Assembly (NCBI GenBank): GCA_965240325.2
Contig: OZ251252.1
Location: forward strand, 372,001 to 436,000
DNA from: Rebecca billardiae RCC1528
Taxonomy: Eukaryota > Protista > Haptophyta
Reading direction: 5' to 3'
DNA: 64,000 nucleotides
Positions 1,656-43,942 of the stretch are shown here, piece by piece (the stretch's first letter is position 1; every line of letters begins with the position of its first letter). Under the pieces are notes generated by a model. It was not told the origin of the DNA. It worked only from the letters and a program-made list of their open reading frames with translations, and searched no databases. The position numbers and the translations under genes are program-made.

Positions 1656-3279
1656 ATGGCCGCGCCCACGGCGTGGCTCTCGCACCTGCGCGCCAACCCG
1701 ATGCGCGCGTGGCTGTGCGCGTCGCTGTGCGCGGTGGCGCTGTACCTCGCGCTCGCGCTCGCGTACATGACGCGCGGCCTCCTCCTCCCGCGCGACGCGC
1801 CGCCCGCCCTCGAGCCCGACGTCCAATTCGTCGGCTCGACGCTGTCGGTTCTCTCGGCGGTCGCGAGCTTCGGCGCGTGCCGCGAGGCGTGCGCGGCGCG
1901 CGCGGGGTGCGTGGGCTGGTCGTACGAGGCGGTGGACACGGCGTGCTGGCTCAAGCGCCCCGGCTTCGCCCGCGTCGTGCACGCCGGCACCATCTCCGCC
2001 GAGGCCGGCGGCGGCGGCGGCGGCGGCGGCGCGGCGCGCGCGCGCGCCACGCAGCAGCAGCTTGCGCAGGCTGTCTGGGCGTTCGACGACGAGGGCGAGC
2101 CGGTCGGCGCGGCGCAGCTGGCCGAGTCGGGCGGCCTCGGCGCCGACGCCGCGCCGGACGAGCAGGGAGGCGCGGGCGCGGACGGCGCCGATTCGCTCGA
2201 CGACATTTTCGACGGCGACGGCGACGGCGGCGCGCCGCCGCTATCGCCCGAGGAGCGCGGCGCGTTTCTGGACGGCGTGTCGCTGTTCGGCGACGTGGAG
2301 GTGCACCAGGACGTCTCCACGCCGCGCGGCTGCGCCGACCTCTGCTGGTACACCTCGCGCTGCGTCGCGTGGGCGCTCCAGCGGTACGCGTACCTGTGCA
2401 CACTCCGACTGGCGCGGCCAACTGCTCTGGAGGACCCGGGGGCCGTTTCGGCCTGGCTCAACGCGACGGAGCTGGCGGCGCGCGCGCGCGAGTGGGGCGA
2501 GCTGAAGCACGCGCGGCTGGTGGGGGACGCCGCTCGGGGCGGCGCGGGCGGCGCGGCGGAGGCGGCGGCGATCGAGGCCGCGCGCGACGCGGGCGCGGAC
2601 GGCGGCGGCGGCGCGGACGGCGGCGGCGGCGCCGAGGGCGGCGGCGGCGGCGGCGGCCTGGACGGCGGCGACGGCGAGCTGGATCCGCTGGCCGGGGACG
2701 GCGGTGGGTGGGGCGTGGATGGTGAGGACGACGACGACGGGCTCGACGGCTTCGACGACGAGGAGGAGCCGTACACAGGCGCGCGCGCCGCCCGCTCGCT
2801 GTCCCCGCCGCGCCGCGCCGCGCCGCGCCGCCCGCTGCCCGCGCCGCGCCGCCCGCGCGCCCGCGGCGGGCGGTGCGCGCTGTTGCGCGCGCCGCCGCTC
2901 GCGCGCGTGACGCTGACCGCGGCCGCGTGTGCCCGTCGGGCTCGCCCCTGCCTTCGCGCCCCGCCCCACGCCGCTCGGCCGGCCGACCGGCCGTTACAAA
3001 AACCGTTACAGGCGCGCCATGGGTGGAGCAGCTCTTGCCCGAGCTGCCGGGAGTCCTGTGGCACACCGGACTCGTGGCCGCCAGCACCGGACTCCCGCCC
3101 GGACCCGAGGCGCCGAGCGGCGGCGTGCGCGTGCAGCCGCGCTTCCTCGAGCGCGACGCGCTGAGCTCGTGCGCGCGGCTGTGCGCCGAGGCGCCCGCGG
3201 AGCCGTGCCCGCCCGCGGAGCCGGCCGCCCAGCCAGCGGCAGCGGGCGCGGCGGCGGCGGGCGCGGCGGCAGCGGGCGC

Positions 3280-3314
<35 letters not shown>

Positions 3315-3802
3315 GTTCGGGCGGGCCGCAGTGTGGCTGCGTGGGCTGGAGCGTGCTGCTGGGCTCGGGCGAGTGCCAGCTGCTGTACGCGCGCGCCGCG
3401 GCGGCGCTGAGGGTGGTGCACAACGACTCGGCCGTCTCGGCGCTCCTCCCGGCCCGACCGCCGCCCAAGTCCGGGGCGGCGACAGCCCGGCCGCCGACCG
3501 CAGCCGCCGCCACGCCCGGGGCTGTGTCGGGTGGCAGCGGTGTGTCCGGGGCGGCGACAGCCCGGCTGCCGACCGCAGCCGCCGCCACGCCCGGGGCTGT
3601 GTCGGGTGGCAGCGGTGTGTCGGGAGCGGCGGCGGCATCCGGCGCAGACGGGGGCGTGCCGATGGCTGCGCCCACGCCCGAGCCCCGTGCCGGTACGGCT
3701 GCGCCGACCGCGCAGCCGACGTCCGGCCTGCCGTCGGGGGCGCAGCAGGTGCCCGGGTCTGATGGCAGCCGCGCCGCGACGCCCGCGACTCGCCGACGAT
3801 AG
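1656..3802 (+). CDS. Type II membrane protein with three PAN/Apple-like Cys modules; 2 exons (1656-2778, 3012-3802)
   Basis: N-terminal hydrophobic anchor (AWLCASLCAVALYLALALAYM). PAN-type patterns CREAC..CVGWSY..CWLK, CADLC..CVAW..YLCTL, CARLC..CVGWS..CQL. A phase-1 GC-AG intron 2779-3011 joins ORF 1656 to ORF 2873 in frame (YT-G-APWVEQ). Confidence 0.7.
3471..3620 (+). repeat. 75-bp in-frame tandem duplication in the PAN gene
   Basis: ccggggcggcgacagcccgg...ggtgtgt at 3471 and 3546, encoding SGAATARxPTAAAATPGAVSGGSGV twice. Confidence 0.9.
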
Positions 3803-4161
3803 CGTCACGCTGAGCACGACGCACGCGGCGCGAGCACTGCTCTGGCTCAGCGCGGCGCACCGTGATAGCCGCCTGGCGCCGTGAACGCGCGCTTCTGCTC
3901 AGTGGCGGCGTCTCAGCACGGCACCTCGTCACAAAGGCTTCGTTCGTCGTTAATTGATGTGACAGCTAGTACTCAGTATTACAGCAGTAGCGTCCGTCGC
4001 GGGGCCTGGCCCGCGCCTCGGGCCCCCCGGGCCACCACCGGGTCCGGCCGGGTAGCAGCAGCAGGCTGCTAGCATTACGTTAGCACGGCGCGGTCAGTAG
4101 TTAGTAGTGACTTCTAGTGTCAGGCCACTGCCTGCGCTACTCACAACCACCTCGGCAGCTT

Positions 4162-39276: not shown

Positions 39277-40425
39277 ATGGCGGGCCCGTGGCTCGTCGCG
39301 GCGGCGACGTGGCTGCCGCTCGGCGCGAGCGCGCTCGGACGCCGCTCCGCGTCGACGCTGCTCGTGAGCTTTACGACAGACCCGGCGAGCGTCACCCTCG
39401 CGCGCGCCGTGCGCGCGCACTGCGGCCGCTGGGAGCCGGTGGAGGCGGCGGGCGTCGCGCGGCTCTGGGCAGCAGCGGACGCCCCCGCGCACGCGCCCGC
39501 ACACCTCCTCGAGATCGACGATCGGCCGGTGCACGCGGACCACGTGGACGTGCGCTTCGCCGAGCTCACCGGCGGCCCCGCCCCCGCCGAGGTCCTCTTC
39601 CTCTCGCGCCACGCCTCGGCGTCCGCGCGCCCGGCGCTCTGCGTGCACCCGATTGGTAACCCGCGCGCGGCGGCGGGCGCTGCGCACGGCGGCTCGGCGG
39701 GGTTCTGCCCGCCGCCCGCGCCGAGGCTGGCGCAGCTGTACCGCCTCGGCCTGGAGGAGTGCGCGCGCGCCGGGCTCGACGCCGAGTTCGAGACCACCCT
39801 CGAGGCGACGCACCACGGGCCCACGCTCGAGCGCGCGCCGTCCGCCTTTGTCGAGATCGGATCGGACGAATCTGCATGGCGCCGGGAGGACGCGGCGGCG
39901 GTGTGGGCGCGCGCGCTGCGCCGGCTGCTGGGGACGGGCGAGCCCGCGTGCGAGGGCGGCGCCGACGCGCGCGTGCCGCTGTGGGCCGAGCGCGACGACG
40001 CCGCGCGCGCCGCGTCGACGGTGGTGCTCGCCTTTGGCGGCGGTCACTACATGCCCGCGCTGTGCGACGCGGCGCGCGCGTCGCGGGGCGGCGGCGCAGC
40101 GGGTGAGGGCGGCGAGCTTTTCCTGGGGCATCTGCTCGCGAGCTACGCGCTCACGGACCTCGGCGCGCCGCGCGCGGCCGAGGGCGCCGAGCCCGCGCCG
40201 GCACACGCCGACGCCGAGCCCGAGTGGCACGCGACCGTCGCGTCGGCCGTGTCGTCGACGGCCGCAGCCTTCCCCGGCGCCGGCCGGCTCCTCGGCTTCG
40301 TGCCCAAGAAGGCGTTCCGGGCGGGCGCGCGCGAGGCGCTGCGCGAGCATCTGGCGCGGGCGCACGGCATCGAGTGCGTGCAGACCAAGGGCGAGCTGCT
40401 CGCGATCGCGGGCGGGCGCGCGTGA
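39277..40425 (+). CDS. DTD2: D-aminoacyl-tRNA deacylase 2 (archaeal DtdA / plant GEK1 type)
   Basis: FLSRHAS, LCVHPIGN, TLEATHHGP, FVEIGSDE..W and FGGGHY in the canonical order. Confidence 0.9.
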   Translation: MAGPWLVAAATWLPLGASALGRRSASTLLVSFTTDPASVTLARAVRAHCGRWEPVEAAGVARLWAAADAPAHAPAHLLEIDDRPVHADHVDVRFAELTGGPAPAEVLFLSRHASASARPALCVHPIGNPRAAAGAAHGGSAGFCPPPAPRLAQLYRLGLEECARAGLDAEFETTLEATHHGPTLERAPSAFVEIGSDESAWRREDAAAVWARALRRLLGTGEPACEGGADARVPLWAERDDAARAASTVVLAFGGGHYMPALCDAARASRGGGAAGEGGELFLGHLLASYALTDLGAPRAAEGAEPAPAHADAEPEWHATVASAVSSTAAAFPGAGRLLGFVPKKAFRAGAREALREHLARAHGIECVQTKGELLAIAGGRA

Positions 40426-40656
40426 CAGCGGACGCCATGCCGAGCGGCGAATCGCCCGGCTCGGTCGCCGCCGGACGACCAGTCCGGAGCTAATTACGGC
40501 TGATATTACGCCGCTTGCGAAAATTGTTTATTGCGCCCGCATCAGCAGCGCGATCGCGTGGACAGCCGGCCTGCTCACTGGACTGGGCCACGGCCGCATC
40601 ATCAAGCGGGGTCCCACCCGCACCGCACGGCCGGCGACTGAAGGAGAGCGCGCGCG

Positions 40657-42696
40657 ATGGAGGGCACGGTCGTGCTGACCACATCCGAGCGCATCACCGC
40701 GGAGGCCATCTCGCGCCTCGAGCGCCGCGGCTTCTCGCTCGTCGGCATCAAGCTCACGCGCGCGAGCGCGGCGCTCGCGGCGCAGCACTACTCGGCGCGC
40801 GTCGCCGACCGCGACTTCCGCGAACTGGTCTCGGCGATGGCGGGGCAGCGCGTGACCGCGATGGCGTGGGAGGGCGACGGCGTCGTCGCCGCGGCGCGCG
40901 CCCTTGTTGGCGAGGGCGACGCCCCCGCCGCCGCCTCGCTCGCCGGCACATTTGGGCTTGCGCGCACGGACGGCGCGGCGGGCGCGCCGCTGCTGCACGC
41001 GTCGGCGGACGCGGCGCAGGGGCAGCGCGAGCTGTGCCTGTGGTTCAGCGCGACCGAGCTCATCCGCGACGCCCCGCCCGCCACGCCCGACGCCGACATC
41101 AACTTCGCCGTCGCCGCGGCCAACGCCGCGGCGGTGTCGGCGGACCCGTCCGCCGCCGCGGCCAAGACGCAGCAGCGCGCGAGGGTGGAGACGCTGTCGG
41201 ACAAGGTGCGCGGCGCGCGGGTGGGCGTGGTGGGCGCGCGCGGGGCGGGAGGGTGAGAGCGCGGGCTGCGGGCGGCCGGCGGCGCGCAGGGCTGCCGCGC
41301 GCGCTGCGGCGGAGCCCGCGAGGCGCTGACTCTCTCGCGCCGCCGCCCGCCGCTCCGCCGCTGCCGCGCCTGCGCCGCGCCACTGCACGGCGCCGTGCCG
41401 CCGCTCCGCCCAGGTGATCGACTCGAACCCGTACAGCCGGCTGATGGCGCTGAAGAAGATGGGCGTGGTCAAGAACTACGAGCGCATCCGCGAGAAGACC
41501 GTCATCATCGTCGGCGTCGGCGGCGTCGGCTCGGTCGCCGCCGAGATGCTCGTTCGGTGCGGCGTGGGTAAGCTGATCCTATTTGACTATGACAAGGTCG
41601 AGCTGGCGAATATGAACCGGCTGTTCTACACGCCGGACCAGTGCGGGCTGTCGAAGGTGGAGGCGGCGCGGCGTTCGCTCGGCTTCATCAACCCCGACGT
41701 GCAGTTTGAGGCGCACAACTACGACATCACCACCGTCGCCAACTTTGAGCACTTCATGGGCCGCATCCAGGCCGGAGCGCTCGGCGGCGGGCGCGTCGAC
41801 CTCGTGCTGAGCTGTGTGGACAACTTCCAGGCGCGGATGAGCATCAACCGCGCGTGCAACGAGCTGGGGCAGGTGTGGATCGAGTCGGGCGTCTCGGAGG
41901 ACGCGGTCTCCGGCCACATCCAGCTGATCAAGCCCGGCGAGCTGGCGTGCTTCGAGTGCGCACCGCCGCTCATCGTCGCCTCAGGTGCGATGCGCGGCCG
42001 GCTGGCTGGCAGCGCGCCGTGGCGCGCGGAGCGGCCGCGGCGCGCGCAGCGTGCGCGCGCCAGGCGCAGCGCGCACGCGGCATTGCGGCGAATGCGCGGG
42101 CTTCTGGGCGGCGGGCGCGCTCAGCCGCCCCCTTCGCTTCGCGCGCGCGCCCCGCCGCCGCCGCAGGCATCGACGAGAGCACGCTCAAGCGCGAGGGCGT
42201 GTGCGCCGCCTCGCTGCCGACCACGATGGGGATCGTTGCCGGGCTGCTCGTGCAGAACGCGCTCAAGTACCTGCTCGAGTTCGGGCAGGTGAGCGAGTAC
42301 CTGGGGTACATCGCGCTGCGCGACCACTTCCCGATGATGTGCCTCAAGCCCAACGCCGAGTGCGACCAGTTCTGGTGCCGCAAGCGGCAGCAGGAGCACA
42401 AGGCGTACCTCGCGTCACTGCCGCCGCCGCCGGCGCCGAGTGCCGCCGAGCCGGCGGCTCCGGTGGACCTGCATCCGGACAACGAGTGGGGCATCGAGCT
42501 GGGGGACGATGGCGGCGACGGCGGCGGCGGCGGGGGCGGCGGCGGCCCGAGCGCGGGCGCGAGCGGGCTCTCCGCGGACTTCAAGTACGCGCACGAGGCG
42601 GCGGCCGTGCAGGAGGTGAAGGCGGAGGACGCGGTGCAGGACACGGGCGCTGACCTGAGCGAGCTGATGAGCCAGCTCAAGGCGGTGCAGCACTGA
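40657..42696 (+). CDS. UBA5: UFM1-activating enzyme UBA5 with an N-terminal degenerate NDPK domain; 3 exons (40657-41205, 41414-41984, 42167-42696)
   Basis: [78 protein letters not shown] (catalytic Cys), [15 protein letters not shown]. Exon 1 is NDPK-like and ends in the UBA5 N-terminal segment [10 protein letters not shown]. Confidence 0.93.
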
Positions 42697-43279
42697 GGAG
42701 GCATTGGCTGGCGGAGGGGGGAATGCGCGGGCGCATCGGCGCGTGCGTGACGCGCGCCGACAGGCGTTGGCGTGGCGTCGGGGCCCCACGTCACGCGCGG
42801 CTCTCCCTCTGCATATTATCGTCCTGCTCAAGGACGAGATGGATATGCTGATATGCACCTTGCAGTTGCAGCACGACGGCGACACGCTTCGCATCGGCGC
42901 ATCAATCGGCGCGGCCGGTCTAGATCGATCTGTGACTGTAGGCAGCCATCCTCGCTGAGCGGATGGCGGCGGCCGGGCGATGATCGTGCGCGTCGTCGAT
43001 CGATGTATATCGCGTCGGCGGTCATCGGCGCCGAATGAGAGCCATCGATCTGTCCTAGCCGTGACGTCCGTGCGCCCGTGCCGGCTCCTGTCCATGACTC
43101 ATGAGTCGACAGTCACAGAGTGAGCAGCATCACGAGGTGGGATGACGACACACGACGAAAAAAATCCGGTGGCCGGACGCGGTCGAACTCGAAGAGAATC
43201 GCGAGCGGTGGGTCGGAGATCGTCCATCATCCATTCTCGACGAGGCCGCGTAATTTGCGCGCCTGGACGACGCTGCACG

Positions 43280-43942
43280 ATGACGGGGCGGAGCCGCTGG
43301 GCGGCGCGCGCGTGCGCGTGGCTGCTGCTCTCGGCCCTGCTGCCGCTTGCCAACTCCCTCCGCCCGCTGCACCACCGGCGAGTCGCGACCTCGCCGCTCC
43401 TGCGCCGCGCCGCGGGCCGTCAGCACAGCGGGGGTCGCGCGCGGCGAGCGGAGCCACAATGCGCCATCGACCTCGCCGAATGCCTGCGCACGTTCGTCGA
43501 GTCCGGGGTGGTGACGTGCGCGACGCAGGCAACGGACGAGGCCGCCCGCTCGCCCGCCGTCGTGGACGACGTCTTCGCCGGGCTCACCGGCGGCTTTGTC
43601 GGCTGCACGGGCACGATCATCGCCCTTGAGCTCCGCAAGGCTCCGGTCAAGAACATGCTCAAGTGCGAGTACTGCGAGGGCACGGGCCGGCTCAAGTGCG
43701 GCACGTGCTTCGGCGCGGGCTGCGACGAGTGCAAGGACACGGGATCCGTGCGCTGCGTCACGTGCGCGGGCACCGGGCGCGCCGTCTCGACCGAGGTCGA
43801 GAAGCAGCAGTTCCGCGCCATCTTTGGGCTGTTCCCCGAGATGCGCTATGGGCCCGAGTCCACCATGTTCGACGACCGTGACCCGGACACGTCGGACGCG
43901 GTGGAGACGACGTCGAGCGGGCGGCCACCATCGCAGCAGTAG
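43280..43942 (+). CDS. Orange (OR)-like DnaJ-type zinc-finger protein, probably plastid-targeted
   Basis: Signal peptide plus Arg-rich transit-like stretch; TM segment VFAGLTGGFVGCTGTIIALE followed by four CxxCxxxG repeats, the layout of the OR C-terminus. Confidence 0.72.
   Translation: MTGRSRWAARACAWLLLSALLPLANSLRPLHHRRVATSPLLRRAAGRQHSGGRARRAEPQCAIDLAECLRTFVESGVVTCATQATDEAARSPAVVDDVFAGLTGGFVGCTGTIIALELRKAPVKNMLKCEYCEGTGRLKCGTCFGAGCDECKDTGSVRCVTCAGTGRAVSTEVEKQQFRAIFGLFPEMRYGPESTMFDDRDPDTSDAVETTSSGRPPSQQ

Follow-up and report, generated by a model that had tools for sequence, protein, structure and literature searches.

Structure of the locus

We analyzed a window of 64,000 nucleotides from the haptophyte Rebecca billardiae RCC1528 (assembly GCA_965240325.2, contig OZ251252.1, positions 372,001 to 436,000 of the forward strand), in which a gene at window positions 40657–42696 encodes a nucleoside diphosphate kinase (NDK) domain joined to UBA5, the activating enzyme (E1) of UFM1. 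Comparison with related sequences established that this NDK-UBA5 fusion is a real gene architecture, which is expressed in a relative and is restricted to one clade. In all related sequences compared, the active site of the NDK domain is heavily altered, and the domain is a pseudoenzyme, probably retained for a non-catalytic purpose.

The gene lies on the plus strand in DNA of approximately 74% G+C and consists of three exons, which sum to 549 codons and a stop codon as counted from their coordinates. Exon 1 (40657–41205) is a single open reading frame (ORF) of 183 codons, with a GT donor at 41206. An in-frame TGA (40639–40641, plus strand) is located 18 nt 5΄ of the ATG; therefore, the ATG at 40657 is the earliest possible start in this frame, and orthologs start at the equivalent residue. 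Residues 1–140 of this exon (40657–41076, plus strand) constitute the NDK domain, and the remainder (41077–41205, plus strand) encodes a linker and the N-terminal extension of UBA5. The linker is a conserved Ala-rich helix (DINFAVAAA in the window and ELNFAIAAA in the ortholog consensus), and the UBA5 segment that follows corresponds to the one preceding DSNPYSRL in prymnesiophyte and human UBA5. A single ORF covers the NDK domain and the linker, and exon 1 contains no Met beyond residue 69.

Intron 1 (41206–41413, plus strand; 208 nt, GT..AG, phase 0) joins exon 1 to exon 2 with the reading LSDK|VIDSNPY, the counterpart of the unbroken LSDKVVDSNPY that relatives show in their ORFs and cDNAs. 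Exon 2 (41414–41984, plus strand) encodes the N-terminal part of the UBA5 adenylation (ThiF) domain, with the nucleotide loop GVGGVGS and the zinc-binding pair CFEC. Intron 2 (41985–42166, plus strand; 182 nt, GT..AG, phase 1) splits a Gly codon, and the reading across its junction is also that of the relatives' cDNAs. Exon 3 (42167–42696, plus strand) encodes the rest of the adenylation domain, which matches the C-terminal part of Pfam ThiF, together with the second zinc pair and the C-terminal tail. It contains the catalytic Cys codon (42202–42204) and the UFM1-interacting sequence DNEWGIEL (42478–42501), and ends with the stop codon TGA (42694–42696), all on the plus strand. The gene had been picked out in an original prediction made from the sequence alone, according to which exon 1 runs into the UBA5 N-terminal segment and is spliced in frame to UBA5; the single ORF, the GT and AG boundaries and the same reading in relatives all agree with this structure.

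We searched the exons separately and used P0170, P0171 and P0172, which are full-length relatives, in place of a joined product. Exon 1 matched the Pfam NDK profile PF00334 (E = 4.6e-20, 72.3 bits with a cutoff of 27) from position 14 to 134 of the 135 profile positions, and the NDK domains of the orthologs scored 35–46 bits against the same profile. Among solved NDKs (E = 4e-19), the best matches were human NME4 (1ehw) and Arabidopsis NDPK2 (1s57). The AlphaFold2 model of exon 1 had a predicted local distance difference test score (pLDDT) of 92.8 and displayed the strand and helix order of NDK, and in a Foldseek search of the PDB with this model, the best 50 matches were all NDKs (probability 1.00, template modeling score by target up to 0.84). 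Exon 1 thus follows the NDK fold as originally proposed, and the motifs cited in that proposal were all present in the translation of 40657–41205. A tblastn search of phage records with exon 1 returned just two weak matches, both to canonical NDKs.

Compared with group I NDKs (PF00334; 1ehw and 1s57), the window domain has the same fold and order of secondary structures (identity, 30–40%) and keeps the equivalents of Tyr52, Arg88, His118, Ser120 and Glu129. However, the equivalents of Lys12, Phe60, Thr94, Arg105 and Asn115 are absent, the Kpn loop is remodeled, and the domain forms part of a fusion with another enzyme and does not stand free. Larger proteins of the NME5-9/TXNDC type also use the NDK fold as a non-catalytic module; one example, P0016 (named thioredoxin domain-containing protein 6), was a search hit with only 27% identity. 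Those proteins likewise carry a non-catalytic NDK fold within a multidomain chain, but their partners are thioredoxin or Dpy-30 domains in ciliary proteins, without a link to an E1.

The UBA5 encoded by exons 2 and 3 is predicted to be complete. Exon 2 matched the Pfam ThiF domain with E = 5.5e-46, and exons 2 and 3 matched the human UBA5 structures 6h78 (1.2e-92) and 5l95 (2.2e-37), respectively. The context of the catalytic Cys in exon 3 is identical to that of human Cys250, DNEWGIEL aligns with the UFM1-interacting sequence of 5l95, and the C-terminal 13 residues, a candidate UFC1-binding sequence, are conserved across all haptophyte UBA5s retrieved. As in canonical UBA5 (6h78, 5l95 and 3h8v), the whole adenylation domain is present, with both pairs of zinc-binding Cys and with the catalytic Cys in its usual context; the UFM1-interacting sequence, a conserved tail and an N-terminal extension before DSNPYSRL are also shared. 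The window protein differs in that an NDK-fold domain of approximately 140 residues and a linker of approximately 45 residues are added ahead of the usual extension.

Orthologs, expression and distribution of the fusion

Eight further orthologous sequences carry the fusion, several of them as one unbroken ORF. A word search with exon 1 yielded two ORFs with 49% identity. In one of them, P0002 of a JGI metagenome, the NDK-like domain runs directly into the UBA5 N-terminal sequence with no intron at that place; the other is P0003, on whose contig (L001) all UBA5 exons lie downstream on the same strand. Three more orthologs were obtained by a phmmer search of 1.84 billion representatives. Two of these, P0013 and P0015, contain NDK and ThiF in a single ORF, which in P0015 is continuous over 378 aa; the third, P0014, is an NDK-only ORF, and its contigs (L007 and L008) have UBA5 exons downstream. 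Finally, a word search with P0015 returned the full-length sequences P0170 and P0171 (544 aa each) and P0172 (531 aa), each with both Pfam domains. The genomic loci of the fusion are all colinear, with differing intron positions and linker lengths. A search of protist transcriptomes for the combination of NDK and ThiF had been suggested as a check on the original prediction.

Expression of the fusion is documented by P0172, an MMETSP transcript labeled complete, which is also found on intron-less contigs of approximately 2 kb in four JGI samples. Its residues 1–111 are 100% identical to positions 2613–2945 of a sequence (L009) from the genome of Pavlovales sp. CCMP2436 (GCA_026770615.1, MU631489.1), and residues 112–150 match positions 4001–4117, again with 100% identity; an intron of approximately 1.05 kb lies between them, and further exons extend over approximately 10 kb. 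Since the transcript matches separate genomic exons, the mRNA of CCMP2436, a relative of the window's organism, splices the NDK exon to the UBA5 exons. In the NCBI annotation of this genome, the UBA5 model (P0174, partial) begins at position 4001 of L009 and omits the NDK exon present in P0172, and a 190-aa minus-strand gene (2429–3500) is placed over that exon.

Other UBA5s returned by the searches, from prymnesiophytes, cryptophyte-like sequences, chlorarachniophytes and animals, differ from the window protein in having 10–60 residues and no NDK domain in this region. In prymnesiophytes (Emiliania, Chrysotila, Prymnesium and relatives), 10–45 residues precede DSNPYSRL. One UniRef sequence among these, P0186 from Chrysotila carterae (496 aa), contains an insertion of approximately 96 residues after APPLIVASG, exactly at the position of intron 2 of the window gene. 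This insertion looks like an intron retained in the transcript, in which case the position of intron 2 would be common to the window gene and a prymnesiophyte.

The original prediction knew of no such fusion, and our search of the literature, which extended to UBA5 in haptophytes and to NDK pseudoenzymes appended to aminoacyl-tRNA synthetases (aaRSs), found no description of an NDK-UBA5 fusion. A phylogenomic study of UFMylation makes no mention of NDK or of domain architecture (PMC10183829). Sequences of the fusion were nevertheless already present in public transcriptomes, unremarked.

Two neighboring ORFs were also observed in the window. Directly upstream, a single-exon ORF of 382 aa (39277–40425, plus strand) ends 231 nt short of the start codon of UBA5; in the identical contig L003, this ORF is annotated with a match to PF04414 (tRNA_deacylase, DTD2-type). 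Downstream, an ORF of 266 aa (43142–43942, plus strand) contains a run of CxxCxGxG-like Cys motifs (CEYCEGTG..CGTCFGAG..CDECKDTG..CVTCAGTG) resembling a DnaJ-type zinc finger.

Active site, selection and relationships of the NDK domain

We scored ten active-site positions in the nine UBA5-attached domains with the canonical NDK P0004 as the ruler, using human NME1 numbering and the nucleotide- and phosphate-binding residues of NDK structures. At the equivalents of Lys12, Tyr52, Phe60, Arg88, Thr94, Arg105 and Asn115, the window domain has T (Thr9), Y (Tyr45), D, R (Arg81), G, G or A depending on the alignment, and P, respectively. It also keeps the equivalents of His118 (H114, codon 40996–40998), Ser120 (Ser116) and Glu129 (Glu125). 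The original prediction had stated that the phospho-accepting His and its Glu partner are kept and that the KPD Lys, the IRG Arg and the Asn before the His are lost, and this description of the window domain was accurate.

The equivalents of Lys12, Phe60, Thr94 and Asn115 were lost in 9/9 orthologs, and the four residues following the KPD position were deleted in all nine. The Tyr52 position was mostly occupied by His, the Arg88 position was variable, and Arg105 was retained in some orthologs but is missing from the window domain and from those with a deleted loop. The catalytic His was present in 2/9 sequences (H114 of the window and P0002) and was replaced by Glu in P0170 and by Ser, Ile, Leu or Cys in the others, while the equivalents of Ser120 and Glu129 were invariant. 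Because catalytic and nucleotide-binding residues are lost across the orthologs and the Kpn loop is shortened or deleted in three of them, the NDK domain on UBA5 is a pseudoenzyme, and the His retained in the window is not a conserved feature. Neither the catalytic His nor the nucleotide- and phosphate-binding residues are conserved as in NDP kinase (EC 2.7.4.6), and on these residues the domain would be unable to act as a kinase or a phosphohistidine relay.

The domain is under purifying selection, which is weaker than that on the UBA5 core. Twenty-seven of its positions are invariant across the nine orthologs, including G25, L28, K32-L33, L40-H44 (LAAQH), A50-R52 (ADR), R55, G73, G75, S116, R124-E125 (RE) and C127-F130 (CLWF); position 54 is Phe or Tyr, within a motif ADRxFR or ADRxYR that begins six residues after LAAQH. 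We compared pairwise ratios of nonsynonymous to synonymous substitution rates (dN/dS, NG86) and found values of 0.21–0.63 for the NDK domain and 0.10–0.14 for the UBA5 core, where the G+C content at third codon positions (GC3, 0.80–0.98) depresses dS and so inflates the ratio. For the NDK domain, dN/dS was below 1 in 21/21 pairs, and in the closest pair it was 0.21 (NG86) or 0.14 (YN00).

Among the phmmer matches were NDK-like domains fused to the N-termini of histidyl-tRNA synthetase (HisRS; P0035, P0106 and P0144) and methionyl-tRNA synthetase (MetRS; P0111 and P0155), as well as P0047, a domain of the same kind whose partner was not recognized. These fusion proteins come from contigs of GC-rich protists, probably haptophytes. 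All of these modules, including that of P0047, have Glu at the His position within ECSADAA or ECSASAA. In a maximum-likelihood tree, the nine UBA5 modules formed one clade (100/99), and the UBA5 and aaRS modules lay together on one side of a branch that separated them from 36 canonical NDKs, with a support of 95/92 in a tree from which two long rows had been removed and whose bootstrap had not converged. In P0170, the His is replaced by Glu within ECSASAA, as in the aaRS modules. The tree and P0170 fit the recruitment of an appended module that may already have been non-catalytic.

The two kinds of module are alike in that both are catalytically dead NDK folds, are located N-terminally on ATP-dependent adenylate-forming enzymes, are followed by an Ala-rich linker and fall on the same side of the tree. 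The aaRS modules differ in having a complete Kpn loop and in retaining Lys or Arg at position 12, Arg105 and mostly Asn115, residues that the UBA5 modules have lost. The His position is occupied by Glu in all of the aaRS modules but varies among the UBA5 modules, and the linker of the latter is not Lys-rich, unlike those of the aaRS fusions. Thus, the UBA5 module would represent a sister lineage to the aaRS modules rather than a member of that group, given that the window domain has His and is without Lys12, Arg105 and Asn115. Two points therefore go beyond the original prediction, namely the apparent relationship to the dead NDK modules of HisRS and MetRS and the restriction of the fusion to one haptophyte clade.

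Possible role of the NDK domain on UBA5

We consider it probable that the following account, taken as a whole, is the best explanation of these observations. A single gene encodes a UBA5 of approximately 549 residues with an independently folding, catalytically dead NDK-fold domain at its N-terminus. The fusion would have a single origin, in a clade of haptophytes to which Pavlovales sp. CCMP2436 belongs, probably by reuse of the dead NDK module that is also attached to HisRS and MetRS, and would since have been retained by purifying selection. The domain would serve as a non-catalytic protein–protein interaction module on a flexible helical tether of approximately 45–60 residues. In a model of the full-length P0170, the NDK domain and the UBA5 core were each predicted with confidence, the pLDDT of the linker was 56–65 and the predicted template modeling score was 0.61, which suggests two domains on a flexible tether without fixed packing.

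UFM1 is bound in trans by the UBA5 homodimer. The most plausible interaction would be self-association at the surface by which NDKs dimerize (helix alpha1 and strand beta2), which may stabilize or regulate that homodimer; alternatively, the domain may dock to a partner. UBA5 is an obligate homodimer, and its N-terminal extension raises the affinity for ATP and promotes UFM1 transfer (PMC12355090). Taken on its own, we regard this dimerization or docking role as a tentative proposal, somewhat short of an even chance. An oligomerization scaffold had been among the functions originally suggested; a non-catalytic scaffold remains the best reading of the domain, and its role is inferred rather than demonstrated.

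Several observations weigh against this account. The dN/dS of the NDK domain is several-fold above that of the UBA5 core. The Kpn loop, which is needed for NDK hexamers, is remodeled but present in the window and is shortened or deleted in P0002, P0003 and P0172 (3/9). The most conserved region (alpha1-beta2) is also the core of the fold, and conservation thus singles out no interface. The grouping of the UBA5 and aaRS modules may reflect long-branch or compositional attraction, as both groups are divergent and Ala-rich. The transcript contig encoding P0171 (L015) has a TAG at codon 7 (positions 27–29; MSAGTE*TLVLL), where the orthologs have Gln, which could be a sequencing error, a strain-specific nonsense mutation with re-initiation at a Met ten codons downstream, or a site of read-through. 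Furthermore, a search for RNA sequencing runs of this alga listed none, and the transcript structure of the window gene itself, including the junction 41205/41414, is predicted from its relatives.

We further considered the possibility that the remodeled NDK cleft is an allosteric sensor, which would still bind a nucleotide or some other small ligand and thereby tune UBA5. In canonical NDKs, the base-binding site is formed by a helix hairpin, which here bears the new invariant motif LAAQH...ADR, and Ser116 and Glu125 are invariant as well. UBA5 activity also depends on its affinity for ATP, which is modulated by the N-terminal extension (PMC12355090). However, the equivalents of the phosphate- and ribose-binding residues Lys12, Thr94 and Asn115 and of the stacking residue Phe60 are gone in 9/9 orthologs, neither the window domain nor the loop-deleted forms have an Arg105 equivalent, and three orthologs lack the Kpn loop, by which the site is closed. 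A sensor of any such kind is therefore improbable, and the canonical nucleotide sensor named in the original prediction is unlikely given the losses in all orthologs.

It is about equally improbable that the domain is a functionless passenger, in other words, that a fortuitous exon fusion is slowly decaying without harm. Such decay would account for the higher dN/dS of the domain (0.2–0.6 versus 0.1 in the UBA5 core), the loop deletions in 3/9 orthologs, the TAG at codon 7 in L015 and the free drift of the catalytic residues. However, the ORF is intact in all genomic and cDNA copies except for that stop codon, despite diverged introns and linker lengths; the 27 invariant positions and the confidently predicted NDK fold also argue against decay, as do the dN/dS values below 1 in all 21 pairs, which are themselves overestimated because dS is underestimated at GC3 >0.8.

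A phosphohistidine switch or a residual NDP kinase activity coupled to ufmylation, the former of which had also been put forward, is highly unlikely. The window does retain His114, Ser116, Glu125, Tyr45 and Arg81, but the His is present in 2/9 sequences only, and the equivalents of Lys12, Thr94 and Asn115 are lost in all, with that of Arg105 also lost in the window. Without these residues, a nucleotide cannot be positioned to phosphorylate the His. As a conserved function of the fusion, the switch was thus not supported. Least credible of all is a gene-model artefact, in which the NDK-like ORF and UBA5 are separate transcription units or UBA5 is translated only from a Met in exon 2 (MALKKMG) equivalent to the start of the short human isoform (residues 57–404, PMC12355090), since a single ORF covers the NDK domain and the UBA5 N-terminal segment and has neither a stop nor a Met between the two, relatives have a continuous ORF and spliced full-length transcripts, and a short isoform might occur alongside the fused form but would not remove the fusion.

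The account of a dead NDK-fold domain acting as an interaction module on UBA5 has several implications. UBA5 is regarded as a minimal E1, and no accessory globular domain on it was described in the literature searched; a conserved and expressed pseudo-NDK on this enzyme would be a natural experiment on the tuning of UBA5 dimerization, ATP affinity or localization. The public UBA5 gene model of CCMP2436 is also corrected by the NDK exon. We also entertained the idea of a haptophyte-specific complex in which the dead NDK modules of UBA5, HisRS and MetRS bind one another by NDK-type dimer or hexamer contacts and the UFM1 E1 would be located beside aaRSs. This idea is speculative and has a low probability; if true, the complex would physically connect ufmylation, whose main known target is the ribosome, with the translation machinery in a new way, and would be an analog of the metazoan multi-synthetase complex on a different scaffold. 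More generally, the modules on UBA5, HisRS and MetRS suggest that one lineage has reused the NDK fold as an appended domain on acyl-adenylate-forming enzymes.

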